This document shows, one piece after another, positions 1-32,222 of a DNA stretch of 32,222 nt. Both the position numbers and the translations under genes were made by a program. The notes below the pieces were generated by a model. That model made no database searches. It worked only from the letters and a program-made list of their open reading frames with translations, and had not been told where the DNA came from. Source of the DNA: Macrostomum lignano (taxonomy: Eukaryota); the NCBI GenBank assembly GCA_002269645.1, contig NIVC01004888.1, forward strand, positions 1-32,222. Reading direction: 5' to 3'. Position 1 is the first letter of the stretch; each line of letters opens with the position of its first letter.

Positions 1-1277
1 GAAATAGCTCAAATGTACCATCACAATAATATATATATATATGCAGCAATATACAAAAGTAAGCCATTATACTCTGGCTATGCCACTGTATACCACTGTA
101 AGATACATAAATAGGTTGAAGGTGGTAATGGCCTACCAGGTAAGCCATAGTCAGGATCATGGCATGCCTATGCTAGAACAAATCTTATCAAAGATAGTTT
201 GATTGTACCATGTGCTAGAACTTTTTTGAAAAAAACAAACACAAAAATTTGTATTTTCCCTTTAAAAAAATACTAGTAAAAACTTTTATTTGAATCTGTT
301 GTATAGAAAAACAACATTAATGTATTTTAATTTAAAATGCCATCAATATACTGGCAAACAAAAAAGTGCTAATTATGCATTAGACAAAGCATCATTTGTT
401 TTTTATTTGGCACTTCACAATATTTTTATACTTTCTGTATTGAATTCAATCTTGTTTGACTATTCTTGAATTCCAAGCCCATTTTTGAAATTTCAAGAAT
501 TTCTCAAAATGATCAAAAAAAGACCCAAGTCTCAAAATTTTGAGATTGAGATCAAGGTTTTGGTCAAACTCTAGTGCATACTAGCAATCAGCGCGCCACC
601 AATTAGGGAGCCAAAAAATGCAGTATAAGTTTTTTTTAATAAACTACATGTAGCAATCTCTTTGCAATATCCCTCAGAAGTCCCTTATAAGACTTGACAT
701 GTCACCAATTCCCCCCCCACAAGCCTTAACATATCAACTTCCAATGCCCCCTATAAGCCTTGAAATCTTAAAAAATCTGTCAACCTTCTAACCTTAACCC
801 TAACCCTAAAGCATTGACAATTCAATAATTCTCCCCAAGAGTTATTATAGCATTACAGCATTATAGCGATTCCCTGTAAGCCTTGACATTGTAGGGATTC
901 CCAAATGAATCTCTTAACTTCAACATGACACTTTTTTATTTTTACATTACGCTTCTTCTATCAGCGACCCCCCATGAGGAGCCAACAAACAATGTAATAA
1001 AAAGTTTTGAATAAACAACATGTAGCTTCTGACTTTAGCCTTAACATCTCAGTTATTCCCCCATGAGCCTTGACATCTCAGCTATTCCCCCGTAAGCTTT
1101 GACATCAATAGTAATTCTCCCTAAGAGTCATAGCATGCAGTTTATGTGATGTTTTTAACATGACATTTCTTTTATGTCTGATATAATGCTTCTTTTGTCA
1201 AGGCTTTATTCTGCTTTTGAATAAACTACATGTTTAAACTATAGCTTCTCTTTGCAAAAACCTTAGCAATCCCTTAT
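1..1277 (+). repeat. Terminal direct repeat, copy 1 (matches 30952..32222)
   Basis: Base 1 (gaaatagctcaaatgtaccatc...) recurs at 30952, and the match runs to the last base of the window (...ccttagcaatcccttat = 1261-1277). The differences I found are small indels. Confidence 0.97.
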
Positions 1278-1330
1278 GAGTCTTGACATCTCAGCTATTC
1301 CCCTTGCAAGTCTTGACATTTTAGCTATTC
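579..1330 (+). repeat. Left arm of a long imperfect inverted repeat (partner ~5200..6224), built from degenerate aagccttgacatctcagctattcccc subunits
   Basis: tactagcaatc...ttagggagccaaa (579-615) and caatgccccc...gtcaaccttctaacc...gggattcccaaatgaatctcttaac (743-920) are reverse complements of 6224-6190 and ~6045-5850. Confidence 0.85.
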
Positions 1331-1429
1331 CCCTTGCAAGTCCTGACACATATATATATATATTCTAGACATTATAGACATGACATTTTTAGTATATAGG
1401 ATTTAGTGTATATCACTCCTAAAAAATAA

Positions 1430-2060
1430 TGTGCATATACACCTGACCCATACTCCAGGTCATGTAATATATACCTGAAAATTTAGGCATGCATTAGCCT
1501 TGTATGCCAAAAGTAGATGTGCATAGTTGGCATACATCACTCCTAAGAAAATACACCTGGCATGCACTTTATAGAATCATGCAGAAGAGTTATTGTGAAG
1601 TAGAAAAAAAGTGAAAAAAGTTTCTTATTATACATAAATTTCTGGCTTTCCGGGTTTTTAAGATTGTAATAAGGTATTTAAACAAATCTTTACATGTATC
1701 AATTTTCTACTGTAAAAAGTATAGCCAAAAAAGCAGAAAAATGAACCAAATTATCTGTTAAAAATGGTATATTACACAATAAAAAGCAAAAGAGGTTATT
1801 TTATTGTCACAATGTAAAAAAGGTCATTTATTGTTGCAACACTATCAAAGTTTTAAGAATAAGCATGTGCTAAATTTTTTGGCATGCATTTATAACTACC
1901 AATTTTTGTTTGGGCATGCATCCAGTATGATCCAGACAATGGCACCTGGCATGCATTGTATAGAATCATATAGAAAAGTCAGTGTTAAGTAGAGAAAGGA
2001 TGAAAAAAAGTTCATTTTTAAGCATAAATTTCAAGCCTTCCAGTTTTTTGAAGCTTGGGG
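1430..2060 (+). repeat. Decayed dispersed repeat copies. 1553-1670 and 1943-2060 are direct copies; 1445-1540 resembles 30655-30750 and the right end of the 7858-8344 MITE.
   Basis: Visual alignment: acctggcatgca..tatagaatcat..aagtaga..gaaaaaa..cataaattt occurs twice, and tcatgta(a/g)tatat(a/g)cctgaaaattt occurs near 1460 and 30675. Confidence 0.7.
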
Positions 2061-2098
2061 AGGGGAGTGGGATAATCTGAGGGCCCCATTCCTCTCTC

Positions 2099-2650
2099 GA
2101 GATTAGCACTACCTCAGCCCAGATTAGCCCAATTGGCTCCAGATTAGCACTAACTCCCCACAGATTAGCACTATTGCCCCCAAGATTAGCACTTAGTGCT
2201 AATTTGGGCTAAGTTGTGCTAATATGGAACAAATTGGGCTAATCTGGGGGAGTAGTGCTAATCTCTGGGAGTAGTGCTAATCTGGAGGGGTGGGGCTAAT
2301 CTGGGCAGAGTGCTAATTTTGGGGTAAGTGGTGCTAATCTTGGAGTGAGACTTGCTAATCTGGGTGGAGTGCTAATCTGGAGCAAAGTGTGGCTAATCTG
2401 GGGTGAGGTAGTGCTAATCTGGGGGAGCGAAATGGGGCTAATCTGGGCTGAGTCCTAATCTAGAAGGGAGTGGTGTTATTTTGAGGGAGTAGCGCTAATC
2501 TGGGATAGTAGTGCTAATTTGATAATGTTAATTTGGAGAAGTGGTGCTAACCTGGGGGAGGAAAGTCTAATCTGAGGGAGTAGTGCTAATCAGGAGGGGA
2601 ACTTGGGAAGTAGTGCTAATCTGGCGGAGTAGTGCTAATCTGGGGACAGT
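2099..2650. repeat. ~20-bp G-rich minisatellite (gtgctaatctggg core) with a head-to-head orientation switch at 2194
   Basis: 5 copies of (c/a)agattagc(a/c)c at 2101-2192, then the palindromic junction attagcact-t-agtgctaat (2185-2203), then about 20 copies of gctaatctgg to ~2650. Confidence 0.9.
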
Positions 2651-2921
2651 AGAGCAAAATCTGATGGTAGTCCTTGTGTCAGTTTTTTTGCACAATTATT
2701 GCAAAATTTAATATTTTTGATTATTTTTGATTATAATATTTAATATTTTTGAATGTAATTTTTGATTAATGGAAATCAACATTTTGGATAATTATAGTAA
2801 GGTTGCTGTTATGCCAAAATAAAAACCAATTGGTGTCATTTTCAAGGCTCCCCAGAGGGGGGGGGCTAAATAGCTAGTCATTTCCTTCCTTTATTTTCCA
2901 ATATACTAAAATCCAATATAC

Positions 2922-3363
2922 TAAAAATGAAAATCTTGTATGTTTGTACACAATCGATTATCTCCAGAATGGCTTAACCAATTTTCATGAGACTTGCACT
3001 GTTCAATCAGAAATTTTCCTGTGACGGTACATGTGTCTTGGCTAAGAAATTGCTCGATGCTAAAGGCATTAAATATTCGAAAAACATGCTTTTTTGCAAA
3101 GGTCAAGCAAACTTTTTGACTTGAAATGCATTGTAAGTTTTTTATATAATAAAAATGAAAATCTTGTGTTTGTACACAATCGATTATCTCCAGAATGGCT
3201 TAACCAATTTTCATGAGACTTGCACTGTTCGATTAGAAATTTTCCTGTGACGGTACATGTGCCTTGGCTAAGAAATTGCTCGATGCTAAAGGCATTAAAT
3301 ATTTGAAAAACATGCTTTTTTGCAAAGGTCAAGCAAACTTTTTGACTTGAAATGCATTGTAAG
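2922..3363 (+). repeat. Near-identical tandem duplication, period ~229 bp
   Basis: aaaaatgaaaatcttgt...acacaatcgattatctccag...gacttgaaatgcattgtaag occurs at ~2923-3137 and ~3151-3363. Confidence 0.92.
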
Positions 3364-3754
3364 AATGCTAGAAAAAAAAAACTGACTAGTTGAATTCTGA
3401 TTCTGAAATAGATTGCATCATAACTGAATTGTAACTCTGACTTGAATTGCATCACAGTATTGAAAATGCAGTGTGGAAGCGTAGCACCAGACTTGATTTA
3501 GATTGCGTAACCATATTGTTAACTGATACTGACTGACTGAGAAATTGATTATGTCATAACTGCCTCATGTGATTTACTCTATGCTTGGAGTTTTGAAACT
3601 TATAATTATAAGTGCTAAAATTCATGTTTGGATTTTAGCTGAGAGCTAGCCTTGAGGTAAACAGACTGAACTGCTAAATGCAGGGACAAAGGTTTGAATT
3701 TTTAGAGAGTAAAGTTTTTTTAATTAAAGCTTTTGAACGCCAAGAAAACTAAAA

Positions 3755-5185
3755 ATCATGGAAGCGTCATGTAAAAAATCATAGAAGCGTTATGTAAACA
3801 ATCATAGAAGTGTCATGTAAAAATCATAGAAGCGTCATGAAAAAATCATAGAAGCGTCATATAAACAATCATTGAAGTGTCATATAAACAAGCATAGAAG
3901 CATCATGTAAAAGATCATAGAAGCATCATGTAAACAATCATAGAAGTGTCATGTAACAATCATAGAAGCGTCATATAAACAATCATAGAAGCGTCATGTA
4001 AAAAATCATAGAAGCCTCATGTAAACAATCATAGAAGCGTCATGTAAAAAATCATAGAAGCGTCATGAAAACAATCATAGAAGCGTCATGTAAAAATCAT
4101 AGAAGCGTCATGTAAAAAATCATAGAAGCATTATGTAAAAAGCATAGAAGGGTCATATAAACAATCATAGAAGCATCATATAAACAATCATAGAAGTGTC
4201 ATATAAACAATCATAATTGCATCATGTAAAAAATCATAGAAGCGTCATGTAAACAATCATAGAAGCATCATGTAACAATCATAGAAGCGTCATATAAACA
4301 ATCATAGAAGCGTCATGTAAAAAATCATAGAAGCGTCATGTAAAAAAATCATAGAAGCGTCATGTAAAAAGCATAGAAGCGTCATATAAACAATCATAGA
4401 AGCGTCATATAAACAATCATAGAAGTGTCATGTAAAAAATCATAGAAGTGTCATGTAAAAATCATAGAAGTGTCTTGTAAACATTCATAGAAGGGTCATA
4501 TAAACAATCATAGAAGCATCATTTAAACAATCATAGAAGTGTCATATAAACAATCATAATTGCATCATGTAAAAAATCATAGAAGCGTCATGTAAACAAT
4601 CATAGAAGCATCATGTAACAATCATAGAAGAGTCATATAAACAATCATAGAAGCGTCATGTAAAAAATCATAGAAGCATCATGTAAAAAAATCATAGAAG
4701 CGTCATGTAAAAAGCATAGAAGCGTCATATAAACAATCATAGAAGCGTCATATAAACAATCATAGAAGTGTCATGTAAAAAATCATAGAAGTGTCATGTA
4801 AAAATCATAGAAGTGTCTTGTAAACATTCATAGAAGCATCATGTAAAAAGCATAGAAGCATCATGAAAACAATCATAGAAGCGTCATGTAAAAAATCATA
4901 GAAGCATCATGTAAAAATCATAGAAGCGTCATGTAAACAATCATAGAAGCGTCATGTAAAAATCATAGAAGCATCCTGCAGAAATCATAGAAGCGTCATG
5001 TAAAACATCATAGAAGCGTCATGAAAAAATCATAGAAGCGTGATGTAAACAATCATTGAAGTGTCATCTAAAAAGTCATAGAAGTGTCATAAAAAAATCA
5101 TAGAAGCCTCATTTAAAAACTAATGAAAGTGTCATTTAAAAATTAAAAAGCGTCATGTCAGACATGAAGGGTGTCATGTAAAAAT
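3755..5185 (+). repeat. 22-23-bp satellite array (catagaagcgtcatgtaaa(c/a)aat), roughly 60 copies
   Basis: Directly visible tandem periodicity. Longer variant runs are themselves duplicated (~4140-4500 vs ~4480-4850). Confidence 0.97.
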
Positions 5186-5199
5186 TAAATGCAGCTATA

Positions 5200-6224
5200 A
5201 TGTTGTGCTAGGGAGAAAAACTGAGACGTAAAGGCTTTCAGAGAATAACTAAGATTACGGGGGGGTTTCTAAGATGTCAAAGCAAAAGTCAGAAGCTACT
5301 TCAAAGTTCATGTACTTTACTCAATTTTTATTGCATTCTTTGTTGCCTCGCCACAGGGGGGGAGGGCGCTGATAGAAGAAGAGTCATGTAAAAAAAGTAG
5401 CACTATATAAGGCCTATACATAATAGAAAAGTCATGTCAAAGTTAAAAGATTCATTTGGGAATTGCTACGATGTCAAAGCTTGGTGGAAATCGTTATAAT
5501 GCTGTGATTCTTGAAGAAGGAATCACTAAAATGTCAAGGCTTAGGGGAGAATAATTGCTGAGATTTCAAGGCTTTAGGTTGGGTTAAAGTTAGGTTTAGG
5601 TCAAGTATGGGTTGAGGGTTATATTTTATCAGGTTTCAAGGTTAATAGAGGATTTTTAAGATTTCAAGGTTTATGAGGGCCATCACTGACATGTCAAGGC
5701 TTATAGGGGGAATAGCTAAGATGTCAAGGCTAAATTTAGAAGCTATATATAGTTTATTGAAAACTTTTTATTACATTATTTGATGCCTCCTTAGGAGAGG
5801 GATTGCTGATAAAAAAGCGTAATGTAAAAAATAAAAGAAGCTTCATGTCAATGTTAAGAGATTCATTTGGGAATCCCTACAATGTCGAGGCTTATAGAGA
5901 ATCGCTATAATGCTATAGTAGTACTATAATGACTCTTAGAGAGAATTACTAAAATTTCAATGCTATACAATTATACAGTTAGGGTTAGGCTAGGGTTAGA
6001 AGGTTGACAGGTATTTTTAGATTTCCAAGGCTTATTGGGGGCATTGCTAAGATGTGAAGGGGGAAATTGATATGTTAAAGCTTGTGGGGGGGAATTACTG
6101 ACATGTCAAGGCTTGACATGGTTTGACAGGAAATTTTTTAAGATTTCAAGGATACATGTAGCTTATTAAAAAAACGTGTATTGCATTTCTTTGGCTCCCT
6201 AACGGGGGGCATAGATTGCTAGTA
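5200..6224 (-). repeat. Right arm of the long inverted repeat; contains two diverged tandem copies of a ~450-bp subunit
   Basis: Reverse complement of 579-1330. Internal duplication: gctgata..aagcgt/gagtcatgtaaaaa..agattcatttgggaat occurs at ~5365-5465 and ~5805-5875. Confidence 0.8.
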
Positions 6225-6390
6225 GTATTACTATTAGGCCCTAGCAGTGAAAATTATAATAGGGCTTAAAGAGACAGGAGAGCTGCCCCATTACAATATC
6301 AAGTATAAAGTGCTACATTGCAAAAAGAGTAAATAAACTCAATAGAAATAAAAACTTTTTGCTTTTGATTAAAAGTAATCATACATAGTA

Positions 6391-6630
6391 CCTAGTCCAA
6401 CTCCTAAGGGCCAAAAAGCATTGCGAATTAGAAATTAGTAGGCCTAGGGGCCTATCTAGTCCTAAGGGCCAAAAAGCATTACATAATTTTTCATAACTTT
6501 AAAATGAAAGACCAAAAAGAAGCTTAAGTCTCATTAAAGTCCATGATATTATTGTATTTTGAGATCAGTATATTCCTATTCACTCATTACTTATTTAAGA
6601 TTAGGAGTCTTTTTAGGAGTTAGGACTAGG
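6391..6630. mobile_element. Putative 240-bp MITE with TA target-site duplication (Tc1/mariner-Stowaway-like)
   Basis: Left TIR CCTAGTCC-AACTCCTAA at 6391; right TIR reverse complement CCTAGTCCTAACTCCTAA ending at 6630. TA flanks both ends (6389-6390, 6631-6632). No ORF. Confidence 0.55.
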
Positions 6631-7857
6631 TAGGTAACAAATAAGAAGTGGTGTAAAATACTTTATCGAAATGGGGATTATCACAGAGAAGAAATGTCGC
6701 AATTGTACTAATATGGTTTAACAAGTTTTATAATTTTTAGATAAACACAGACTGTCAGTTATTTAGGAATGTTTTAAAACTTCATAGTTGCCATAAATTT
6801 TAGTGATCTGTAAGATTTCGTAGAACGATGATGATATTTTAAATTTGCGCAACTTAACAAAAAACTGCCGTAAATTTAATAACAAGATTTTTAAATAGAA
6901 AAACGTTTTTAATACAACTTTTTTCTAATGTTTACTAGTAATCATTTTAAAAAATTGTCAGGAATTGTAAAAGTTGTAGGTTTGGCACAGTTTTGTAAGA
7001 TTAATTTCAAGAATCAAATTGATTCTAGACTTTGATTCGCGCAATCGCTCGGTTGTTGATTTCGCAATGTGGTTCAACAGAAAGTTGCAGTCCTCGTTTA
7101 TATTCCTCGTCCTCGTTAAGTTTTAGGCCTATTCCTAATATTTAAAGCATGATATTTAATAATAATAGTAGTTTATAGCTTATTATTGATAATTTGAAAC
7201 AAAAAAGCACACTTTTTTCACAGAATTAGTCAACAATCAATTGGGATTGGATTTTAACAAGTAGATGGAGGATGGACATGGAAATGTTATAATACAATAC
7301 TATTAGTCTATTAAATATTTAAATAGGCCCAAGAAAGATGTATCATGTATGCATTGATGGCTTGATACATTATTCATTATTCCTAGCATCACTTAGCATC
7401 ATTGACTTTTAGGCTAGGCCTAGTCTTTATCTTTATTAAGAGTGAGTTATTACATATTAGGCAGGGGCAATGATTTGCAGAAAAAGAGCATTGCAAGCAA
7501 GTGTTGGCAGGAAAAAAAAGTGGCATTCTTCTCAAATTGTTTGTTATTTAAACTATTGTTTTCAATGTTTTTTGCTTTTTCCATCTAAAAAGTTGATTTT
7601 AACATGTTTTTGTTTAGGCATTCCCCAAGCTATTAAAACAATAAAATTAACAACTTTGTTTTTTGCACTTTTTTCATTTCTAGCAATTCCCAATGATTCC
7701 TAGCAATTCCTAGGCCTAACAATTCAGAGCAATTTCTTGTGATTCCTAACAATTCCTTTATTTATTTAAAATAATTCCTAGGCCCTAACAATTCAAAGTT
7801 TCAAAGTTTTTTATTTTAGTTCCAGATTAGTGCTGAAATCCAGGACCAGGGTCAGGA

Positions 7858-8344
7858 CCATAGTGTGGATCATGCTAAGTGCACGCGAGAAACGACCCAA
7901 AGCTAATTCCCAAAAGCACGCCGACGACAAGCGAATGCACGCCGATAAATTAAAATTCAAATTGAAGACAAAAAACGTATTTTAAATTGCATTGTGTAAA
8001 ACAAAGCAACAAACGATGTACAAAAGAAATGATATATCTTTAAAAACGTGTATTTCTCATACATTAATGTATTTAAATAAACACTGTTTATTTACAATAG
8101 TTTTTTTCAAAAGTTAAATACAATAATACGTATTTTATGTCTGCTTACCATTGCATTGGCAGCTTTGCCACATCAGGTGGCAGGCACGCGGCACGCGGCG
8201 CATGCCAGGCACACCAGTGTATTTATGTAGTGTGCATTATGCATGCCAAATGCATGCCACTTACCTAATCGCACGCCGGTGCACGCCACTTTTGAAAATG
8301 CACGCGGGAAAATTCTCGCGTGCACTACATGATCTACACTATGG
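7858..8344. mobile_element. 487-bp non-autonomous DNA transposon (MITE) with ~33-bp TIRs and an 8-bp TSD (hAT-like by TSD length)
   Basis: Left TIR CCATAGTGTGGATCATGCTAAGTGCACGCGAGAA; right TIR reverse complement CCATAGTGTAGATCATGTAGTGCACGCGAGAA. Perfect flanking direct repeat GGTCAGGA at 7850-7857 and 8345-8352. Confidence 0.85.
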
Positions 8345-10094
8345 GGTCAGGATTGTGTACCGCTGTACGCCGGAACAAAAATTGCTTCCGTAGCTCATGC
8401 GCACTAATATATACCAACAAACTTTTTATCACATTCAAAAATATACAAAAATTACAAATCTGCAACTAATATTAAAATTAAAAGCTTGCAAAACTTTAAT
8501 ATTTTTAAAACTTATGTGCTAAAACTGAAAATCTTATACTAAGCAATAGAGAACTAGGGGCCTAGTTTATTTCAACTATTTTTGTTTTACTTTTACTTTC
8601 CTAGAAAAGTTTAACCTGGTTTTTTTAATTTAGTTTTCCATTTTTTTCGTAGAGGCCACGCGCCAGCTATTCTTTCTGACCAAAATTTAGCTACTATAAC
8701 TATGTACATTGAGACTATGCCAAATGCAAACTTAATCATTTTTGTATGCTAATTATATACATGTAGATTGATTGTTGGGACTTGGAACTTTTGGTCCCAC
8801 CTACTAGTCTCGGCAATTGCAATATGCCAAGAGGGCATGCCAGGCCCCTTTGTATGCCAAGTTGTACGCCAATGGTATAATCTAATGTATACCATCTGGA
8901 GTCTGGATCCAGGAATTGTGTTGTCTAATATGACAATAATGCTTGGAAGTGTCTATGGCCCAAAGGGATAAGTTGGTTAAAGGGAAGGGAAGTATAAGCA
9001 TTTAGACTTATGTTCTTACTACTAAGTTTTTGGTATAGGTCTATCAATACTATGCTAGGCCTAGGAGGCTGCCTGGCTGGCAACACTAAATCCAAACTTG
9101 CTATACAACACTTTCAAGCTAACTAAAAAATATGCTGATATCAAGAAGAATGTCAAAAAAGCTTGTTTGGCAATTTTCTTGCAGAAAATTTACTCATGGG
9201 GTAAATACTTATACACTTTAGAAAAATCTTAGTAAAGGCCTAGGTAAAGCTAAGTAGGAAAATCTTGGCAAATAAATCTTGGACTTGGTAAGCTTTTTAA
9301 CATGTCCTAAGGCAAAAAAGTCATCCTATATTGACTAAAAATACAAAAAAATTGATGACTATTGTCTAAGTTATATGCCAAATGGAATTACCTAATTGAC
9401 AATTGACATAGTGACCACATTTAAATTTAAAGGTCCACTGATTAGCTAGTTGACAAATTGACCTGAGGGTAATAACAATTTGATTAGGATCCTAGAATGC
9501 TTTATTTTGTCTAAAGAAAGGAAAACACTTGTAAGGCCTTTTTTGATAAATTATAGAAGTCTAAATATAAAACAAACCTATATTATAATGTTTATCTATA
9601 GTCTAGCTAATCTAGCTAGGATAGATATATCAAAATGTTAGCTATAAACCATATATTGTATTACTCGTAGAATAGCTAGATTAGCCACTAAGGTATATAT
9701 ACTTAGCAAAATAGCTTTCTACTTTTAGTAGCAATAAAGAATACATAAGCCTAAGCTATTATATAAGAATAAAGATAGCTAAAATGAATTTGATAAGTTT
9801 AGAAGCTAATCTTACAAATATAAATGGCTTGATAATTTGTTTAGCCATAATATAATATTAGCCATTGTACAAAGCAGATTTAAGGTTGAAAAACTGAAGG
9901 TAGGCCTAATAAAATTAGGTAATAGCATAGGAATAAAGCTTCTATGTAATGTAGAATTAGAGGGTTTAAGCTTTGAGATTCAAACCAATACTTGTAAATA
10001 AGCCTTGTCTTTATAAATATACTAAAATAATTCAGTTTAACTTACTATTGAACTGAAAGTTGTTTGAATGCAAATGTGCTAAGTGGCCTATCTA

Positions 10095-10680
10095 GTTATT
10101 CTAGTATATCCATATACTAAAAATGCTTTGTATATGTATGTAATAAATTTTAGGAAAAAATAGTTTAACCAATTTTCTTCAAAGTTGCACCATTCAATTA
10201 GAAATTTGCATTGTAGGTAAGAAATTGCTAAATGCTATAGGGATTAAATATAACAAACATGATTTGTGCAAAGGTAAAACAGCTCTTCTGACATGAAATG
10301 CATTGTAAAAATGCTAGAAAAAAACTGACTGATTGAATTCTAATTTTAAAATAGATTGCATTGCACTAAGCTTTTTACTGGCCAAATTTTGACATGTCAT
10401 AGTTTGAAAATGCAGTATGGAAGCATAGCACATGACTTGATTTATATTGCATAACTATATTATTAACTTTAATAGACTAGTATTGACTTGACTAAGAAAT
10501 TGATTGTCATAACTGCTTTGTGTGACTTAATTCTGACTTAGTATGAGTATTAAATAAGTGCTAAAAATTCATTTTATAAAATCAACCAAAGCTACCTGGA
10601 TATAAACAGACTACACTGCCAATGCAAAAACCTAGGTTCAAATCTTTGTAATTAATTTTTTTATCCAAAGCTTTTACTAA
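10095..10680 (+). repeat. Diverged dispersed copy of ~3150..3740
   Basis: Shared blocks in the same order: ttaaccaattttc, gaaatgcattgtaa.aatgctagaaaaaa, gaaaatgcagt.tggaagc.tagcac, agaaattgatt..gtcataactgc, taagtgctaaaa.ttcat. Confidence 0.85.
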
Positions 10681-10714
10681 AATATTCATTAAATAATTAT
10701 TAAATAGCAAAAAG

Positions 10715-11095
10715 GATTTTTTTGAACTAGCTGAGATATGGAATATTGCACTAGCTAAGAAAAGGACTATTGCACTAGCTTAGAAAATAATTATTGCACT
10801 AGTTAAGACAGATTATTGCACTGGTTGAAAAGGATAGCCACCCTTGCCAAGCTTTTAGCCAAGCTTAATATTGCAGTGGCTGATACATAGATTATTGCAC
10901 TAGCTTAGAAAGGGATTATTGCATTACCTGAGAAAGCTATTATTGCATTAGCTGAGGAAATTGTTGCATTAGCTACTTGCTTTCTGGTGGATGCTTGCTA
11001 TCTGAAGGGGGGGTGTTTGATATCTCAGGGATGCTTGCTATCCGGGGGGGGGGGGTGCTTGCTATCTGTGGGATGCTTGCTATCTGAGATATTGT
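10715..11095 (+). repeat. Degenerate short tandem repeats: ~21-bp attattgcactagct units, then gatgcttgctatc units
   Basis: About 10 (t/a)attgca(c/t)ta motifs at 10740-10970 and 4 tgcttgctatc motifs at 10990-11085. Confidence 0.7.
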
Positions 11096-11568
11096 AACTA
11101 TCAGTCAGATTTCTGACTGATATATTGTTTTATAACCTAGGCTTGCATTTTTGGTGGCATGCATAAATGTTGAATAAAAGCATTTTTTAATTGTTTTAAT
11201 ATTCCAACATACATGTATATTGTTATAATAATGGCATACATAAGTTTATAAAATAAGTATATGCTATCAGTTTCTCAAATAGTAAGCTGCTTGTTGACTT
11301 TAAGCTTGAAAGTTAAAGACTTGAAACTTTGTTTCAAGCTAATGGACATCATTTTGAGGATTTATCATGAGTCTGTCTCTCCTTTGTTTGATGTACTGTT
11401 AACAAAAGTGTTATTTTTTTAGTTTATACTTGGGTTTGGCTACCCTGTTTCGGTCCTCAGAGACTGTAAAATGGGGCCAGATACTCTGCTAGCATTAAAA
11501 ATTTACCAGCATATGACAAATAGTTTTAACCCAGTTTCAAATCGCTCACAAAACAATGGACTTATTGC

Positions 11569-13611: not shown

Positions 13612-14525
13612 GGCGGACAGACATACACTGCAACAGCAGACAGACACTGCAACAGCAGACAGACACTGCAACAGCAGACATACACTGCAACAGCAGACAG
13701 ACACTGCAACAGCTGACAGACACTGCAACAGCTGACAGACACTGCAACAGCAGACAGTCAGACACTGCAGACAGACAGACACTGCAACAGCAGACAGTCA
13801 GACACTGCAGACAGACAGACACTGCAACAGCTGACAGACACTGCAACAGCAGACAGTCAGACACTGCAGACAGACAGACACTGCAACAGCAGACAGACAC
13901 TGCAGACAGACAGACACTGCAACTGCAGACACTGCAGACAGACAGACACTGCAACAGCAGACAGACACTGCAATAGCCGACAGACACTACAACAGCAGAC
14001 AGACACTGCAATAGCAGACAGACACTACAACAGCAGACAGACACTGCAATAGCAGACAGACACTACAACAGCAGACAGACACTGCAATAGCAGACAGACA
14101 CTACAACAGCAGACAGAGACTGAAACAGCAGACACTGCAACAGCAGACACTGCAGACAGACACTGCAACAGCAGACAGACACTGCAAAAGCAGACAGACT
14201 GCAACAGCAGACACTGCAGAAAGAAAGATACTACAGACAGTCAGATAGACACTTAAAACAAAGAGACAGGCGGTCAGACAAGATAGGTTCAGTTGGACAG
14301 CTAGATATGTACAAAAAAGACAGGTTCAGACAAGACAGACCTTCTATGGTAGTCCACACAGTCCACACATAGAAGACAGCAGGTCCAGACAACAGAAAAT
14401 GCAACTTCAGACAGACAGGTAAGGAAATACCAACAACCAGGTCCAGACATGAAAGACAAACAGACCCAGACATAAAAGACAGGCAGGTCCAGACGACAGC
14501 AAAGACAACTTCAGACAGACAGATA
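13612..14525 (+). repeat. 19-bp GACA-derived minisatellite (caacagcagacagacactg) decaying into GACA-rich sequence, in ARIH2 intron 2
   Basis: Tandem array to ~14230, then a degenerate gacag-rich tail. It is the source of the spurious Cys/Gln-rich ORFs in the track. Confidence 0.95.
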
Positions 14526-16827: not shown

Positions 16828-16928
<101 letters not shown>

Positions 16929-18583
16929 CTTACTCTAATTTCAAAGCCGTGTAAAGTTTGGATCCACCGATCTTAACTCCAACTCAAAGACCCCTAATTA
17001 ATCCCAAAATTTGTCGCCCTAGTGCCGTAATGCTTCCGTTTCGTGAGCACGAAATTCCATGCGGGCATGCAGATTACGGAAGCAATTGCTCCCACAATAG
17101 GGACGCTTGTCCCATTGAGAAGATGGAAGAAACACGGATGAATTCCCCTATATACTCAAGTCGCTGAGCTAGGCGAGGTGTTTCAGTGTTGAAAGGAAAG
17201 CCTTTTGTCTATGCAAATGCAACCGGCTGGTCAATCGCTGTTGTGGGCGGTGGTGTTTGGTGGTGGGCAGTTGAGTGTGAAGAGTCCGGTTCGTTCGGGG
17301 GGTTGCTTTGACCCTTCCGCTTTCGCGAACAACATATTAGACTGCGTAGTTTTTGTATAGTAGACTAGCGCGGCTCACCACCCCCCCCTCGGGTAGCTCA
17401 CCCTCCAAGTTCTTGTCATATAGCCCGAAGGTCTACGACTCAACACCCGCACCGCTGGACTGGGGAGTTCTAAGGACACGTGGCCACCGACTCTAACCGG
17501 TTTTAATCGAGCAAATGCGTCCCTCTACCGGCAGCTCAAAAAGAGAAGAGGCCAAGTGAGAGAAATGGAGAGACGCTGGCCTCTCATCTCTTTGATTCGC
17601 GGCTGTTTAGCTGAAGGGCCGGAGTTCCCTACAGAGCGAGCGCGTGCCCTGCCCGCGTCCGGCTCTGAGCTGAAGCATCCGTCACTGGCCTCCGATATTT
17701 GACTGAATAGTGGGCCGACTATTCTTTTAAAAGCAAGCAGAAAATATTGGTATTGTTGCAGAAAGATCGTTCGTCGATGGGGTCTGTATCTATCAGTCTC
17801 TCCTATGCGCTGAAGGGATATTAGAGCCAACACTTCACGCCTCCCTGTGTGGCAGCTCTGAGCAAACATGGGTCTACCGCCAGTTGTGGAGGCAGTCCTC
17901 TGCGCACACCTGAACTCCCAAATCGCCAGCCCCGAGCACACGGAGCCAAAACAGTTCACTGTTTCCATAACCAGCGAGTCCCAGTGAGTTTTTTGACTCC
18001 TCCATCTTTGGGGACTCCTCTCACTGGATAGTCTGGCCGCGTGTCTTTCAGCGCCTCTGTCAACAAACCGAGCGAGACAGACAGAGCGGTGACTGCAGGC
18101 GTTCGACGTCCTGATGTGTAAAAAATATGATAAAACCGCATGCGTATTGAATCTGCTATGAATCTGTCTCTGACTGTCTCTCTCTATTAGACAATGGTTA
18201 GCTGAGACAGAACTTTGGCCCGCATAATCCCAGAGAAATAATCCCAATTATATTCCTCCCTTAACCCACTCGTCAGTCAGCTAGCAAGGTAAGGGAGGTG
18301 TGCTGAGATCGCGGGCCCTGTTGGCAAACAATCATGCAATACTCTGGCACCACTCGATGCAAACTCACCGCAAACCGCCAGCACACGGCTGCTTATTTCT
18401 GCGTGAATGAGGCGGCTGAGTGAGTGGGAGAACCTGCACAACTGATGAGGACCCACTCGCGAGGACACTTTGCAGACACTTTTCATCCACTTAACCCGCC
18501 TAGATAGCCAGCCTCTCACTGCCTCATCACCTGATGCTGAAGCAGCGAGGGCCTGCTCAAGAGAACACTGGAGCTTCCCTACC

Positions 18584-19212
18584 AAAAATATGTTACTTAT
18601 TGAGCGCTTGCGTCCTGCGCGCTCAAGTCAAAGAAATATGTTTACTAATTGCGCGCTTGCGTCCTGCGCGCTCAAGTCAAATAAATGTTTACTAATTGCG
18701 CGCTTGCGTCCTGCGCGCTCAAGTCAAATAAATGTTTACTAATTGCGCGCTTGCGTCCTGCGCGCTCAAGTCAAAGAAATATGTTTACTAATTGCGCGCT
18801 TGCGTCCTGCGCGCTCAAGTCAAAGAAATATGTTTACTAATTGCGCGCTTGCGTCCTGCGCGCTCAAGTCAAAGAAATATGTTTACTAATTGCGCGCTTG
18901 CGTCCTGCGCGCTCAAGTCAAAGAAATATGTTTACTAATTGCGCGCTTGCGTCCTGCGCGCTCATGTCAAAGAAATATGTTTACTAATTGCGCGCTTGCG
19001 TCCTGCGCGCTCAAGTCAAATAAATGTTTACTAATTGCGCGCTTGCGTCCTGCGCGCTCAAGTCAAAGAAATATGTTTACTAATTGCGCGCTTGCGTCCT
19101 GCGCGCTCAAGTCAAAGAAATATGTTTACTAATTGCGCGCTTGCGTCCCGCGCGCTCAAGTCAAAGAAATATGTTTACTAATTGCGCGCTTGCGTACTGC
19201 GCGCTCAAGTCA
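18584..19212 (+). repeat. 47/49-bp CpG-rich minisatellite, 13 copies (aaagaaatatgtttactaattgcgcgcttgcgtcctgcgcgctcaagtc)
   Basis: 13 cores counted by eye; near-identical, abutting with no spacers; two length variants. Confidence 0.97.
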
Positions 19213-19789
19213 TGCGACCCACAGGAAAAATTGCTGCTCCAGATTCTGCTTCAAAGTCTCCTTGGCTGCAGGATCCACATCAAGAATCTCGTGCTTCCGC
19301 GGCTAATCCGTGCACGGCGGAGCAAAAACGGAAAGCGAAAATATCGTGTTGATTCGAACAATCTCAAAGCAAAACAGGCACAAAACGTTGCCGCCAAGAG
19401 ATGCCATCAGTTTTCTGAGCAGGCCTTCCTACTCACCTGCTGCTTTGATTTGATTCCGTGATTGACAAGGCTCACGATTTTTAAATCTATTCAAAATTGC
19501 AGCGATCTACGCTTCCAGTTGTTTGTAAACAGCAATGCCAGTGCTCTGCCGTTGTGAAGGACTACGGTTGAAAGAGAGAATAAACAGAAGACTTGAGGAA
19601 ATCGCAAAGAAAAGCAAAAATTTCCCGTGCTTTGCCGGCAAAAGAGACAATGCCTGCCGAATATCAAGAAAGTGCCAAACATGCTGGCACGCGATTATCT
19701 TTGTTGTGTTTTCTTCTCGGAGTATTTATAGCTTTTTCTATTATCTTCTGTCTAGGTCACCTTACGGTATTGAATTTTCCGTGTCTCTA

Positions 19790-20110
19790 CATCTACATCT
19801 CTACTCCATCCCATCCCGTTCGCTACATCTCCCTCTTCCTCTTCATTCTCTCCTGCCTCTCTCCACCTTCATTCTCTCTACTCTCTCCAAATTATGTGAA
19901 TTTATCCCTCCATTCTCGCTAACCTCTTCCTCTCTTTCTCCACTTTTCCTCTACCTCTCTCTCTCTCTCCCTCTCTACTCCCCCTCTACCCCTACCTCTC
20001 CCTCTCCACTCCCCTTTTACCCCCATCTTCCTCTCCACTGCCCATTTACCACTCCCTCTCTACCTCTTCCTCTGCACTCCGTCTACCTCTCCCTCTCTGC
20101 TCCTCTGCTT
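19790..20110 (+). repeat. C/T-rich low-complexity tract
   Basis: Polypyrimidine ctctcc/ctctac runs. Confidence 0.9.
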
Positions 20111-20950
20111 CCGTCCGCAGTCATATCAGCAATCCGACACACCCACCCGCCAGCTCCATGATAGCTATGAGTGACACAGCACGCCTGTCAATAAACCCAT
20201 TTTTGGAACAGTAAAAACAGTAACTGGCTACACAGTACACGTCTCCCCATTTCCCCAGTCAGACATTTGTTTGACAGGGCCAATGCCGAAACCAGTAACT
20301 GACGCTTGACCTCTGTTGCCCCTCGACTTCTATTGTTTTTATTTGTCAAGTTTTGTTAGTTTTTTGTTGCCAAGCCGGTAAGTAACTCCGCGATCTATGC
20401 AATACGGAGCCAAGACTGCCGCTCCGCTCCTGAATTTCGGATGGATAGTCAAAAGACTCTGTGGGTCACCAAATGTGTAAGAATATTAAACAGTTACTGG
20501 AATAGACAAGTGATTTCTTACGAACAGCTGCAAATTATTTCTGCATGCAACATCATCAATTGCTAAGTGCCTCAACAGCGAATCGTTTAACTCCTTGATA
20601 ATTAGCGCTGACAGAGCAGACCCTCGCCTCAACAAGCTGCCCGGTGGGGGCGCCATCATTGACCAAGGCGGTAAAAGGCATCGGGCATGATCTTGGCAGA
20701 CTGGAGACCCTTTGTTTCCTACTGACGCCACTGCGGAGCTCTCGCCGCTTCAGGCACCTGGCTGGCTGACCAGAGACTGCGCGACCCGCTGGTAACTCTG
20801 TCAGCTGTTCGTCTGCTGCCTGCCGCAGCTGACTGTCTATGTTGGGGACTGCAGGGCGATGCATTATGGCTTGACTGCTTGAAATTTATTATGCTCTTTC
20901 GTGACTAACCAGACCGGTTTGAGGTATCCCTGGGAATATACAGTAGCAGT

Positions 20951-21027
20951 ATAGATATATAGATAGATAGATAGATAGACAGATAGATAGATAAATAGAT
21001 AGATAAATAGATAGATAGATAGATAGG

Positions 21028-21062
<35 letters not shown>

Positions 21063-21063
21063 G

Positions 21064-21122
<59 letters not shown>

Positions 21123-21123
21123 G

Positions 21124-21154
<31 letters not shown>

Positions 21155-21155
21155 G

Positions 21156-21186
<31 letters not shown>

Positions 21187-21187
21187 G

Positions 21188-21222
<35 letters not shown>
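20951..21222 (+). repeat. (GATA)n microsatellite with gaca/aata/ggta interruptions
   Basis: Direct. It is the source of the LSIY-repeat ORFs on the - strand. Confidence 0.99.
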
Positions 21223-21883
21223 CGAAGACACAGATGCAGGCACAATTGCTGATAATAGGTCCCGCTAAGCAAGGTGAACTGTGCAATAATTGGGATTCAG
21301 ACGCGTCACCCCTTCAATCCGATTCATCCATTAGCAAGCCTTTGTATTTGAAAAGCAAGATAAGAAAGTTACAACTGCAATATCGGCAACAATGAGCATC
21401 CATCTAAAGTTAACGCCAGACCACCTTTTGTCAGGTCACCCTGGCTGAGCAACATGCAGTTGAAAGTGGCTGACAGACCGCATCAATCACACCAGCAGGT
21501 AACTGTGCAGCCACCCTGGCACTTAACGCCTGGCTGCACATTAACCCCATTTATTGCGCGTCACATATCGATAAACAAGAAGACAGGCAAATAGAAGGAA
21601 ACGCGTTAAAAACTTGAAGAAGCACAAAAATCAAGCCTTCTTTTGCTGCGGCTTTAAACAGAGACAGATAAAACCTGACGCACAATGTTTGATCAGGCTG
21701 TGAATCAGCGTTTAGGTGAAAATAGGCGAAGCTGAAACTACGCGTAATCTACTAATGGACTTCCCCACCATGGAGTTTTAAACCTGGAGTACCAACGGAT
21801 TGCATCATCCACTCCCGAGTCCGAAGTGCCAATGGCTGGATCAACTATGCATCAGCGAAATAACATTTTGTTAGCAGCAGTAT

Positions 21884-22250
21884 AGACAGACAGACAGACA
21901 GACAGACACTAAGATAGACAGACAGACACAGAGACACTAAGATAGACAGACAGACAGACACTAAGATAGACAGACAGACAGACACTAAGATAGACAGACA
22001 GACAGCTAGACAGCTAGACAGACACTAAGATAGACAGCTGACAGACAGTCAGTCAGACAGACAGACAGACAGATAGACAGACAGACAGAGACAGACAGAC
22101 AGACTTAGTGACAGACAGACAGCTAGACAGACAGACAGACAGCTAGACAGACAGACAAACACGAAGACAGACAGACAGACACTAAGATAGACAGACAGAC
22201 ACTAAGATAGACAGACAGACAGAAAGACACTAAGACCGACAGACAAGCAG
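21884..22250 (+). repeat. Compound (GACA)n / gacactaagata microsatellite
   Basis: Directly visible. Confidence 0.95.
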
Positions 22251-24040
22251 AGAGACATCAGAAGAGACACTTGGTCAGTAATAACATGATAAAATTAGCC
22301 CTTAGCAGCGAGGAGAAATCCAGGAAAAAGGCATCGAGTAAAAATCAGCACAAAGCCAGTAGCCAGGAGCGCATGCATGGCGACGCCTGGAGGCTACATA
22401 GTAAATGAAAGATTGCCGGGCCCAGATAAGAGAGAATCAGCTGGAGACTGCATGCAGGCTCGCCACTCGCCCCTTGAGAGGAAGCGAAGTGACCAGCAGC
22501 CAGCCGCAATGCCCCAACCCCGCCACCTCTTCGGCCGCTATACAAAAACCGAAAGCGTCGAAATTTGGGAGGCAGAGCGCGCGGGAAAATTTAATTTAAT
22601 AATAATATATAAAACCGCGGCTTCCTCAGTATAGGGAGCTGGCTACCACCGTGAGCTTAACACGCAGGGGTTGGAGGGCGAGTGAGGATGTAATAATACG
22701 ACAAGGCGAGATCCTCGAGTTAGATTATACGGCCAACCAATGTCAGATGTGATTACCGCGACTAAAAATCTAAATAGTGAGGAGAGGCCCTCCCAACTCC
22801 CATCTCTCTCGTTGACTATAGCTGCGCGAGGGATCCTATCCCAGCGGTGGGAGGTTCGCACTTCCTAAACCTTCCCTTAATATTATCCCGCGAAATATCG
22901 TGGTCCCCGCTTTTTGGAGCCGCGAGCTCGAGGCATCGTGTGCTCGCGCGGGGCCGCTTTAATGCAATTTCTCCTGCCGTGCTCACACAAAGCGGAGACT
23001 CACGCAGCTTTATTTATTATCCTACCGGCTTGCTGAATATGCGCGGCAAGCCATCCCGGAAATCGAGAGGCACTGAAGCTATAAATTGCAGCAGCAGTAC
23101 CCACCGTAAAAAATATACAATTATTAGCGAGCAGAGCTTATAGATTATGAAGTAAAAACAACACCATGTTTCCTGCTATAAGAGAGATCGGTGCAGCAGT
23201 ATAGCTGAGGACACTTTAATGACCCGCTGAGCTGGTAGTGACAGAGACTACATTCTGTCTGCCTTAATCCCGCCTGACCTAGTCATCATAGCTAATATCT
23301 GGCTAATCCATCAAAGACCCTACATAGCATCTGCCCGCGTAAAAGTTGAAAATAACTGCAGTAGCTTTTGCAAGCTCGTGTATTGCATGTACATACTCGT
23401 ACTGCACGACAACTTCCAGGGCCAATGTACGTCCAGGAGACTCAGCGACGGGGGTCGTACTCTGTCCACCCGCCTTTCAGTTTGAAAGATAAATGATGAA
23501 TAATAAGTCGAGTCTGGAAATCTCTAAGCCGATGTTAACACTGTCACAGATAGGAAGGAAAGAACATACATTAAATACGCATCCCCTATCCACTTGAATA
23601 TCCATTTCTGTTCCAAGAAAGAAATACTAGACTGAGAAATAAGCCGGCAGAATTCTAGTTTATAAGATAACATCTCCGCTATGGCCCCGATCAGGCCTGC
23701 GCGCCACCATATGGACAAGTATTTGTCCGGGTCGGGCGGCAGGCTAAATGTAAACTTAGCGAGCCAAAAAGCTGCAACTGGGAATGATTTTTTTATAATC
23801 CCACGCCCGCCCGCCCAGCCAGTTATGTTTACACAGTGCGAGCTAGATGATAAATGTAATCCGCAGCGCAGATTTACATATATATCCTACTACTGCTAAG
23901 CTAGTTAACATGACCATCATCAGTTGCCAAAGAGCACACATATGCATACACCTATCGCTTTCTTGCTGCACACAAGACTTTGCTGCTGATGTAGCGCGCT
24001 TCAAGTTTTGATAAAGAGATTGCGCGTCTTCTAATGCGCT

Positions 24041-24388
24041 AAATTTATTATTTAACCATGAAAAAACTATCCCCACTAGACTACTGAACAAAACTGTTAA
24101 GTAGGTAGGTAGCGCAAATAGCAGCTACAATCTACGATAGGTTAGTCTTACATAATAATACATCTGCCGCAAATTGTATTTCACCAAACTGGCGCAGTTA
24201 AAATGAAAGTTAAAATTTATTATTTAACCATGAAAAAACTATCCCCACTAGACTACTGAACAAAACTGTTAAGTAGGTAGGTAGCGCAAATAGCAGCTAC
24301 AATCTACGATCGGTTAGTCTTACACAATAATACATCTGCCGCAAATTGTATTTCACCCAAACTGGCGCAGTTAAAATGAAAGTTAAAA
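24041..24388 (+). repeat. Near-identical tandem duplication, period 172 bp
   Basis: aaatttattatttaaccatgaaaaaactatcccc...ggcgcagttaaaatgaaagttaaaa starts at 24041 and again at 24213. Confidence 0.95.
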
Positions 24389-25454
24389 CACTGTTGTTGC
24401 TAAAAAGCATTTTTACAACAATAAATATGCCAGTAAAAATAACTGTCACATAGTATACAATGATATAATTATATATCTCAATAGCGTAACAATAGGTTTC
24501 AGAATTTTTGCTCCAATGCTAAACAAGGTTGCGCATGAAAATGCCAATATTAGAATAAGGAAGATGCCAGAATTATGAAGACTTAGTAGACGAAGAAATG
24601 AAAAAAAAAGGAATGCCACACTGACAGAGACGCTAGCAATGCTGGGTAAGTGAAGTACAGTATAAAAGTAGAATTTAATTTAAAAAGCTTTAATAAAACA
24701 TTATAAGATTTGTTCAGAAATATTTTGTTTTATTTATCAAGTTCCAAGGAAGGATTCCATCGGTAAGAAATATCTAGCTATAAGGATTATAAGGATAAAG
24801 GTGAGCTTTTATTAATAATATATACGAGTACTATTGTACTATTATGATTACAACATAAATTGAACACAGACCGGTAGACACAATGCCACTATAAATACAG
24901 AGCTATCTTTCTGTGTTACAGCGTGCCACGTGTATCAAATTGAGTTTTGCCATCCTGAACTTGGCACCCGGTTTTTTAAACTGAATACCACTTTGAAATT
25001 TAATATCCATATTTTTTGAAATTCTATTTTATATAAAGTATCAATAATCTTGTGGCTCTGGAGCCCTACACTCGTATCTAAGTTAAAATCACTGAGTTGC
25101 GTCTAGAGTGCATCTAAGTCAGTAAGTAATTCTGACGCCTAGAAAAGCTAGATACAAAAGAATATAAAAATTTAAGAACTAAAACAGACACACGCATTCG
25201 TAAAAATGCACAAAACTATTTGTTATACTGTAGCTAACTTGGCATTATAGTAGTTACAATCAAACAGAACAATTAATTACACAATAGAATACGGTATACA
25301 TGAGAGATTAATTCCGAAAACCAATTAACATAACAAGTACAAAAAACCAACTATTTTAATTTGATATTGCAAAAACACGCACAACAAAACTGGTAATAAT
25401 TAGTAAACATTGACATGATTTATAGTAGATAATAACAGTCATTTTTTGGGTGAT

Positions 25455-29593: not shown

Positions 29594-29844
29594 CAATGTT
29601 ATGATCAAAATTACTACAATAAATTTATTTGCAAATATAAACAATCATAGTCCAGTTTCTGAATTGAAACACTGTTAAATCAATTTTCTTTTTTAGATGG
29701 TAAGAAACTTCTGGTTAATAATCAGATATCCTATTTTTGGTAAATGTTATAATGTAGATGTTATAAAATAAATGCTTAATTCTTTCAGATGCATTTAAAT
29801 TTCAAATTTAAAGACACAATATATAACTAGAATACTTAGCTTAA

Positions 29845-29902
29845 TCTTTGGGGCATATCATATCAACAATTTATATATATATCATATGATATGCCCCAAA
29901 GA
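29845..29902. other. Perfect 19-bp inverted repeat with a 20-nt spacer (hairpin/cruciform), upstream of TMEM168
   Basis: tctttggggcatatcatat (29845-29863) / atatgatatgccccaaaga (29884-29902). Confidence 0.9.
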
Positions 29903-30404
29903 CTAGTATATGCCATGATTTAAGCTAAGTTGTTATTAAGCTTAGTATGCTAGGGACTCCTTATATGTGCCAGAATTTTCTATGGCAAAGGCCACTTTCT
30001 TGACTAACTAGAGCTATCTATAAGAAAATCTATATAATCTACATTTGACAGAAAAGTTAATGCCCAAAGTTTTACTTGTCCAATAATGCATAACAAATAC
30101 TACCAACTTTATATGATACACTCGTACTATTACTACTAGTATATAATATAGTAATTATTAGACAAGTAATGCATTAAAAGATAAGTATAGCAAGAACAAA
30201 AGACACTGTTACAGCAGTGAAATCAGTCTTACAAAGAAGAATAGATAGGCTAAACCTGCCACAACTCACAACTTGATGACATTAATAGGATTGTGTTAAA
30301 AAAGAGCAAATCCCATACATCACACTCATACATGCCCAACACCCATCTGACTTGTCTGAACTAGATGGGTGAAATGGCTGCCGGCCAAGGTAAGTTGCAA
30401 AATT

Positions 30405-30540
30405 GAAAATGCAAAAACAAAAAATTGGGGGAAGAAAGAAAGGAGAGGAAAAGAAAATGAAAAGAAAGGAGAGAAGAGAGAGGGTGGAAGAGGAGAGAGA
30501 AAGAGCAAGAAAAGAAAAGAGAAAAGGCAAGAAAAGTCAT
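30405..30540 (+). repeat. A/G-rich low-complexity tract
   Basis: aaag/gaga runs. Confidence 0.85.
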
Positions 30541-30951
30541 ATACAAAATGAAAATTGAGTCGCAATTGAAAGTAACTAAGTCGCAATCGGGAGGAACTAA
30601 GTTGCAAATCTGGACAAAACTAAGTCACACTGGACAGGTGAAATTTTGATGTTAGGCATGTATGATCACACTCTGGATCATGTAGTATATGCCTGAAAAT
30701 TTGGGCAATGGGCATGCATTGGCTTTGCATGCCAAAAGTAGGCATGTACAATAGAGTCTAACTGAGATTAGATTTTTGTTTTCAAGGCAAGATTGAGTAA
30801 GAATTTTATAAAAAATTCAAGATTGAGAATAAGTTAAACAAGAATTGGAGATCCAGCTGCAATTGTATATTTGTACAGAATGAATAGTATCTACAATAAG
30901 ATATATATACAATTTAGCCTATATTATAAATAAGTAGATAATAAAACAAAA

Positions 30952-32222
30952 GAAATAGCTCAAATGTACCATCACAATAATATATATATATATGCAGCAA
31001 TATACAAAAGTAAGCCATTAACTCTGGCTATGCCACTGTATACCACTGTAAGATACATAAATAGGTTGAAGGTTGGTAATGGCCTGGCCTACCAGGTAAG
31101 CCATAGTCAGGATCATGGCATGCCTATGCTAGAAAATCTTATCAAAATAGTTTGATTGTACCATGTGCTAGAACTTTTTTGAAAAAAACAAACACAAAAT
31201 TTGTATTTTCCCTTTAAAAAATACTAGTAAAACTTTTATTTGAATCTGTTGTATAGAAAAACAACATTAATGTATTTTAATTTAAAATGCCATCAATATA
31301 CTGGCAAACAAAAAGTGCTAATTATGCATTAGACAAAGCATCATTTGTTTTTTTATTTGGCACTTCACAATATTTTTATACTTTCTGTATTGAATTCAAT
31401 CTTGTTTGACTATTCTTGAATTCCAAGCCCATTTTTGAAATTTCAAGAATTTCTCAAATGATCAAAAAAAGACCAAGTCTCAAAAATTGAGATTGAGATC
31501 AAGGTTTTGGTCAAACTCTAGTGCATACTAGCAATCAGCGCCACCAATTAGGGAGCCAAAAAATGCAGTATAAGTTTTTTTAATAAAACTACATGTAGCA
31601 ATCTCTTTGCAATATCCCTCAGAAGTCCCTTATAAGACTTGACATGTCACCAATTCCCCCCCCACAAGCCTTAACATATCAACTTCCAATGCCCCCTATA
31701 AGCCTTGAAATCTTAAAAAATCTGTCAACCTTCTAACCTTAACCCTAACCTAAAGCATTGACAATTCAATAATTCTCCCCAAGAGTTATTATAGCATTAC
31801 AGCATTATAGCGATTCCCTGTAAGCCTTGACATTGTAGGGATTCCCAAATGAATCTCTTAACTTCAACATGACACTTCTTTTATTTTTTACATTACGCTT
31901 CTTCTATCAGCGACCCCCCATGAGGAGCCAACAAACAATGTAATAAAAAGTTTTGAATAAACAACATGTAGCTTCTGACTTTAGCCTTAACATCTCAGTT
32001 ATTCCCCCATGAGCCTTGACATCTCAGCTATTCCCCGTAAGCTTTGACATCAATAGTAATTCTCCCTAAGAGTCATAGCATGCAGTTTTATGTATGTTTT
32101 TAACATGACATTTCTTTATGTCTGATATAATGCTTCTTTTGTCAAGGCTTTAATTCTGCTTTTGAATAAACTACATGTTTAAACTATAGCTTCTCTTTGC
32201 AAAAACCTTAGCAATCCCTTAT
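30952..32222 (+). repeat. Terminal direct repeat, copy 2 (matches 1..1277)
   Basis: Colinear with 1-1277; differs by small indels, mostly in homopolymer runs. Confidence 0.97.

Follow-up and report, generated by a model that had tools for sequence, protein, structure and literature searches.

In long-read assembly, an end overlap with consensus noise is the usual sign of a cyclic layout. The assembler Canu leaves repeats of less than ~3% divergence unseparated when no reads span them, and its so-called bubble contigs are small, mostly redundant sequences that carry just a variant region or minority variants (PMC5411767). The draft assembly Mlig_3_7 (GCA_002269645.1) of the flatworm Macrostomum lignano was produced from PacBio reads with Canu 1.4 (errorRate 0.04), followed by Pilon polishing and SSPACE scaffolding, and its authors reported 180 Mb of duplicated blocks at an identity of at least 95% (PMC5730564). 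Most of the four-copy blocks of Mlig_3_7 have three-fold read coverage, i.e. they are erroneously expanded, and 36% of its scaffolds are chimeric (PMC10733133). In this study, one complete contig of this assembly, NIVC01004888.1, was analysed over its full length (32,222 nucleotides; hereafter the window). It carries the gene ARIH2 and a TMEM168-like gene, and its two ends are copies of the same sequence, termed here R. As judged by comparison with the other copies of the locus, the window most likely (with a probability of roughly 60%) records a ~31-kb head-to-tail tandem duplication in a chromosome, either fixed or polymorphic, and the adjacency that matters for this reading is a junction (J) lying inside the window, between the 3′ sides of the two genes.

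The terminal overlap of the contig

A BLAST comparison of the first and last 3 kb of the window yielded a match between its two ends of 1289 columns with 97.6% identity, 1 mismatch, 24 gap openings and 30 gap bases (coordinates of both R copies are given in Table 1). This match is far beyond chance, its limits are the exact start and end of the window, and its offset implies a unit length of ~30,951 bp. Each of the 24 indels is of 1-5 nt (including those in an A-run at 270 and in TGGCC at 129/31080), and because of them the match was split into pieces at offsets 30944-30946 in the repeat scan. A preliminary description of the window had correctly recognized its exact bounding by copies of a 1.27-kb repeat as well as the nature of the differences between them (indels of 1-5 nt), and both examples that it quoted were recovered.

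Wherever the two copies of R disagree, one of them matches the independent contig NIVC01000076.1, which in the interval 24488-31079 shows 1 difference from the window in 6.6 kb. Since the differences between the copies are all private to one contig end, they are consensus noise and not mutations. The limits of R do not coincide with any natural boundaries: NIVC01000076.1 runs through both of them at ~100% identity and has one copy of R, while one paralogous locus (L004) aligns across 30952 and another (L001) across 1277 into 1278-1348. Both features by which an assembler end overlap is recognized were thus found, namely differences of the error type and the joined order, with a single copy of R, in NIVC01000076.1. 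The redundancy is an assembler overlap with low-coverage consensus noise and no biological repeat, and R itself is an arbitrary piece of the spacer, native intergenic DNA that was placed at the two ends of the contig. Read-through of a SMRTbell with a missed adapter was also considered and ruled out, as the window contains no long inverted repeats or internal palindromic symmetry (its longest non-microsatellite inverted arm is 118 nt).

Two observations concern the spacer around R. The segment 5686-6224 is a ~540-bp inverted, ~80% identical partial copy of a part of R (31.7-32.2 kb, which equals ~750-1270), and a minisatellite composed of 62 units of 23 bp (3751-5158) has the opposite orientation in NIVC01000075.1. 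These may be traces of old local inversions or duplications, or of a repeat element of the spacer.

Chromosomal context of the locus

The same gene pair is present on three large contigs, NIVC01000075.1 (278 kb), NIVC01001852.1 (148 kb) and NIVC01000076.1 (150 kb). In 3/3 of them ARIH2 and TMEM168 are head-to-head, at distances of 35 kb, 24 kb and 12.9 kb, respectively, and the spacer of NIVC01000076.1 is the same 12.9-kb spacer as that of the window (12,875 bp including 29645-30951, with 33% GC vs 46.6% in the rest of the window). The path 24213->30951->1->14213 of the window and positions 68822-89792 of the NIVC01000076.1 record form one continuous 21-kb alignment with a single copy of R, in which one substitution (window 1765) was found outside tandem arrays in ~21 kb. 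The window interval 13641-16825 is 99.75% identical to the same contig, which is continuous over 24213->30951->1->16825 and has its own flanks, termed P and Q. On the ARIH2 side, site patterns among the four copies include no site private to the window or to NIVC01000076.1, and 46 sites in 2.4 kb split these two from the other two contigs.

Given the 21-kb alignment and the gene order in three contigs, the join through R and the head-to-head order of the genes are native chromosomal features. This changes the picture drawn in the preliminary description, in which the R join was the novel junction: it lies inside the 150-kb contig NIVC01000076.1, with one copy of R and distinct flanks on both sides. 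The head-to-head arrangement of the genes across a ~12.9-kb AT-rich block holds as to order and length, but it is native and was not made by circularisation, and the tail-to-tail order, taken there as native, turned out to be the novel adjacency (16825/16828). Unique chromosomal flanks, which the description regarded as incompatible with its reading, were found in part, in that the sequence of the R join is flanked in NIVC01000076.1.

Also on the ARIH2 side, NIVC01001852.1 and NIVC01000075.1 are sisters and NIVC01000076.1 is the outlier. This branching would fit a putative assignment of NIVC01000076.1 to subgenome S and of the other two contigs to L1/L2.

The novel junction

All five of the first loci lose collinearity with the window at 16825/16828, where the sequences of both breakpoints were read directly. 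On the left of this point there is a 47-bp minisatellite, which in the chromosomal copies comprises ~10-15 units and is followed by flank Q, holding a gene for a 171-aa product. On the right there is an (ATCT) array, whose chromosomal counterparts consist of 66-100 units, including variant units, and are preceded by flank P; in this array 25 units are present in the window vs ~75 in NIVC01000076.1. The two sides of J belong to the same locus, in which they are ~31 kb apart and in the same orientation. The window lacks both flanks and, as expected of a head-to-tail duplication, J is missing from the three paralogous contigs, which have P and Q instead.

This geometry is that of a tandem duplication or a circle, and we infer that random ligation into a chimera would hardly ever produce it. 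A repeat-mediated false overlap at J was ruled out, since no ATCT/AGAT array is present in the 10-kb Q flanks of NIVC01001852.1 and NIVC01000075.1, and both P and Q are absent from the window. From these comparisons, the truly novel adjacency is the tail-to-tail join at J, not the join through R, and J looks like an end-joining or replication-type breakpoint.

Across J (16818-16835) the window reads AGATAGATCTATCT, which contains a perfect 14-nt palindrome centred on GATC, in which the native ...GAGAT is followed by the filler and by the first ATCT units. The palindrome may be due to chance or may be a trace of a fold-back or templated insertion. The (ATCT)25 array at 16828-16927 and an (ATAG)68 array at 20951-21222 are reverse complements located 4 kb apart. 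Together they make up a long but imperfect inverted repeat composed of microsatellites, and the three chromosomal copies all have the same pair.

The diverged region next to the junction

Between the (ATCT) array and the block identical to NIVC01000076.1 lies region b, where 43 substitutions and 13 indels separate the window from NIVC01000076.1 outside tandem arrays. Among 5383 clean columns of the four copies, private sites number 29 for the window, 7 for NIVC01000076.1, 23 for NIVC01001852.1 and 24 for NIVC01000075.1, and 7 sites group the window with NIVC01000076.1. Transitions are about as frequent as transversions (as counted from the site lists), and substitutions exceed indels, whereas the errors at the contig ends show the opposite (30 indel bases to 1 substitution). 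A mutation cluster at the breakpoint, of the kataegis or break-induced replication type, is not supported as the source of b by this mixed spectrum.

These substitution-type differences and the window's own array lengths (Table 1) show that a physically separate copy exists next to J. Similarly, the window is not merely the same reads assembled twice, because J, the private substitutions of b and the array lengths are all peculiar to it. The divergence of b may have resulted from haplotype exchange, with the sequences being identical by descent only right of 24.4 kb, from later gene conversion, or from a partly averaged consensus in the NIVC01000076.1 version of this low-divergence region; each of these causes is possible.

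No gene is annotated within 16928-24487, and the larger open reading frames (ORFs) of region b had no Pfam match. The region, located 3′ of TMEM168, is GC-richer (46-53% GC), and the paralogous contigs differ in it by ~0.3-1.7% outside tandem-array bins, vs 2-8% in introns and spacer. The deep split between NIVC01000076.1 and the other two contigs, which at ARIH2 comprises 46 sites in 2.4 kb, is nearly gone in this region (7 sites in 5.4 kb). The low divergence could be due to constraint, to gene conversion between paralogues or to a transcript missing from the annotation.

A tandem duplication model and its weak points

The above features could be brought together if NIVC01004888.1 is a Canu cyclic or bubble contig, whose path is closed by one real head-to-tail junction, J. 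The duplicated segment, TMEM168-ARIH2, would be located on the chromosome of NIVC01000076.1 or on a variant haplotype in the worm pool, and its structure would be P-(ATCT)75-a-20-kb block-short 19-bp array-J-(ATCT)25-b-same 20-kb block-long 19-bp array-minisatellite-Q, where a stands in the first unit as b does in the second. The short-range links (P to a; short array to J to b; long array to Q) are reliable, and the path P-a-...-J-b-...-Q is the simplest single molecule fitting all of them. Because the two units would have the same 20-kb block, which exceeds the length of nearly all reads, Canu would have produced one large contig skipping one unit (NIVC01000076.1) and a leftover loop (the window), with ends overlapping inside the block. 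In this model the support of J by reads, the linkage of the units in cis and their number of two are presumed. The same contigs would also arise from a polymorphic duplication in pooled worms, from a free circle or from more than two units. Of the preliminary reading as a circle or a tandemly amplified unit, the cyclic path was retained, with a head-to-tail junction added, while the terms extrachromosomal and amplified found no support.

Several points weigh against the tandem duplication. NIVC01000076.1 is itself an uninterrupted path from P to Q and, if this path is true, the loop has to be placed elsewhere, or else it is polymorphic or circular. Moreover, b is about as distant from NIVC01000076.1 as a paralogue (29 private sites vs 7), while the other ~23 kb are identical; this is not predicted by a simple recent duplication, which therefore needs haplotype exchange or later gene conversion in addition. 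Finally, the prevalence in Mlig_3_7 of four-copy blocks with three-fold coverage and of chimeric scaffolds (36%) also has to be set against it (PMC10733133).

Alternative explanations

The same assembly statistics (PMC10733133) favour a pure artefact, in which J would come from a chimeric read or misjoin and the window would be an erroneous fourth copy of a three-copy locus (S, L1, L2). Also in line with it are the ~23 kb of the window identical to NIVC01000076.1, the location of both J breakpoints within tandem arrays, which are common failure sites of assemblies, and the (ATCT)25 array being a perfect 100 bp. However, the sides of J have no common sequence that could cause a false overlap, and it would be very unlikely for a random chimera to join two sites that lie 31 kb from each other in one locus and share their orientation. 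An artefact would also have to account for the 29 private substitutions of b, with their non-error spectrum, and for the window's own lengths of the 19-bp array and the 172-bp repeat. We regard it as unlikely.

A higher-order tandem array, in which the assembler would have collapsed at least three copies of the 31-kb unit (i.e. a true amplification), is considerably less probable. Although a cyclic contig fits any number of units, the annotation has no more than four copies each of TMEM168 and ARIH2, with a single one on each contig, and both the ML2-derived UniRef set and the norm of three copies speak against a large excess copy number.

Slightly less credible again is a ~31-kb extrachromosomal circle with intact ARIH2 and TMEM168, excised through joining of the two arrays and abundant enough to be assembled. 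Recent excision predicts identity with NIVC01000076.1, but b is distinguished from it by 43 sites outside arrays and three arrays are of different length, and a linear source with b and flank P was not found among the four annotated copies. The cyclic path with a single head-to-tail junction, the lack of P and Q in the contig and the uninterrupted, non-duplicated chromosomal path of NIVC01000076.1 all agree with a circle; nevertheless, a tandem duplication with a 20-kb identical block predicts a cyclic contig equally, and it is a priori improbable that bulk wild-type worms harbour a homogeneous circle at high copy number. The existence in wild-type M. lignano of a stable, abundant circle of ~31 kb that has diverged from its source in the 7.6 kb beside its closure junction is, by a small step, more doubtful still.

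Two real dispersed 1.27-kb repeats bracketing the genes, such as long terminal repeat (LTR) or transposon ends, which the direct repeat at both contig ends and the degenerate inverted partial copy at 5686-6224 could suggest, can be practically dismissed, since R has no natural boundaries, its limits are crossed collinearly by NIVC01000076.1 and the paralogues (L004 and L001), and its copies differ by error-type indels only.

Genes and other features of the window

The features of the window are collected in Table 1.

Table 1 Features identified within the window (contig NIVC01004888.1).
Feature	Position	Strand	Remarks
R, head copy	1..1277		~10 private indel columns relative to NIVC01000076.1
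AT-rich, minisatellite-rich spacer, main part	1278..11568		collinear and identical in NIVC01000076.1
ARIH2 (ariadne-2, RBR E3 ligase), PAA46382.1	11569..16495	+	Pfam and homologues
19-bp minisatellite, ARIH2 intron 2	13618..14213	+	0.6 kb vs ~1.85 kb in NIVC01000076.1
47-bp minisatellite 3′ of ARIH2, left of J	16750..16825	+	two units, the second cut after ...CCAGACTGAGAT
J filler AG (2 nt)	16826..16827		belongs to neither side; absent from chromosomal copies
pure (ATCT)25 array 3′ of TMEM168, right of J	16828..16927	+	sequence read directly
region b	16928..24487		7.6 kb; sole substitution-diverged part of the window
172-bp repeat	24041..24388		2 copies vs 1 in NIVC01000076.1; sharp edge between diverged b and identical block
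TMEM168-like gene, PAA46383.1	25838..29644	-	annotation and similarity to M. lignano protein
R, tail copy	30952..32222		~21 private indel columns relative to NIVC01000076.1

The coding blocks of ARIH2 are located at ~11569/11620-12036, 13101-13595, 14634-~15100 and ~16289-16495. Its predicted product matches the Pfam families IBR, IBR_1, RING and Ariadne and is 49-53% identical to the ariadne-2 proteins of many animals in alignments covering 87-98% of the query, and on this basis the identification is considered solid. The ARIH2 copies are not separable by protein, because their products are identical in all four (the window and loci L007, L008 and L009) apart from the gene-model ends. Non-coding bins around the gene differ by up to ~8% in substitutions despite the identical protein. 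The frame of ARIH2 exon 2 (window 13098-13976) stays open for ~380 nt into the 19-bp minisatellite, which produces a misleading ORF of 292 aa.

For the TMEM168-like gene, coding blocks were placed at 29644/29590-27974 and 27513-26980, with an annotated third block at 26122-25838, and the long minus-strand ORF 27914-29644 is 98% identical to an M. lignano protein. The name TMEM168 is derived solely from UniRef, in which members of the M. lignano cluster are called 'Transmembrane protein 168'; the product had no Pfam match, and a word-based search gave no homologue from outside Macrostomum. The annotated model (807 aa) splices from ~26980 to 26122-25838, over a 20-bp minisatellite (26318-26874), and the open frame itself continues to a stop at 26875; the ML2-derived UniRef models have 714-715 aa. 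The 3′ end of the gene model (window 25838-27435) is thus uncertain. Scans of the window for tRNAs and Rfam families gave no matches.

Implications and comparison with known systems

NIVC01004888.1 is an ordinary assembly feature, which probably reflects an ordinary segmental duplication in a redundancy-prone genome. For curation purposes, it should be treated neither as a fourth ARIH2/TMEM168 locus in its own right nor as a circular replicon. Gene knock-outs and expression analysis in M. lignano are known to be hampered by copy-number errors. The contig also illustrates how exact repeats exceeding the read length yield 'circular' contigs in the redundant Mlig_3_7 assembly. If J is real, it would constitute one concrete structural difference in a neopolyploid genome, namely a tandem duplication of ~31 kb whose two breakpoints each fall within a tandem array. 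New biology would be implied solely if the reading as a circle were confirmed.

Among known systems, the Canu contigs with overlapping ends and the bubble contigs (PMC5411767) resemble the window in having the same sequence at both ends, with errors concentrated in the low-coverage ends, and in being small, mostly redundant with a large contig and the carrier of a variant region. In contrast to a replicon such as a plasmid, an organelle genome or a virus, the window contains two nuclear genes of the host, and its cycle is closed by a rearrangement junction. The erroneous fourth copies of Mlig_3_7 (PMC10733133) are comparable, as here too a fourth copy stands beside three copies fitting S, L1 and L2 and is largely identical to one of them; unlike these, the window is set apart by J, by the private substitutions of b and by array lengths of its own.

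Extrachromosomal circular DNA (eccDNA) and double minutes share with the window a cyclic path of tens of kb, full genes and a junction without long homology. Unlike eccDNA, however, the sequence of the window is also present in a flanked chromosomal contig, and the copy matches no source locus found: b carries 29 private substitutions and three arrays differ in length. The window resembles tandem segmental duplications formed by end joining or replication template switching in that its one head-to-tail junction shows no homology and has a filler of 2 nt, both breakpoints fall in tandem arrays, and the unit contains whole genes. The window departs from them in that its 7.6-kb region b is diverged to the extent of a paralogue and the rest is identical, for which a tandem duplication would need haplotype exchange or gene conversion.

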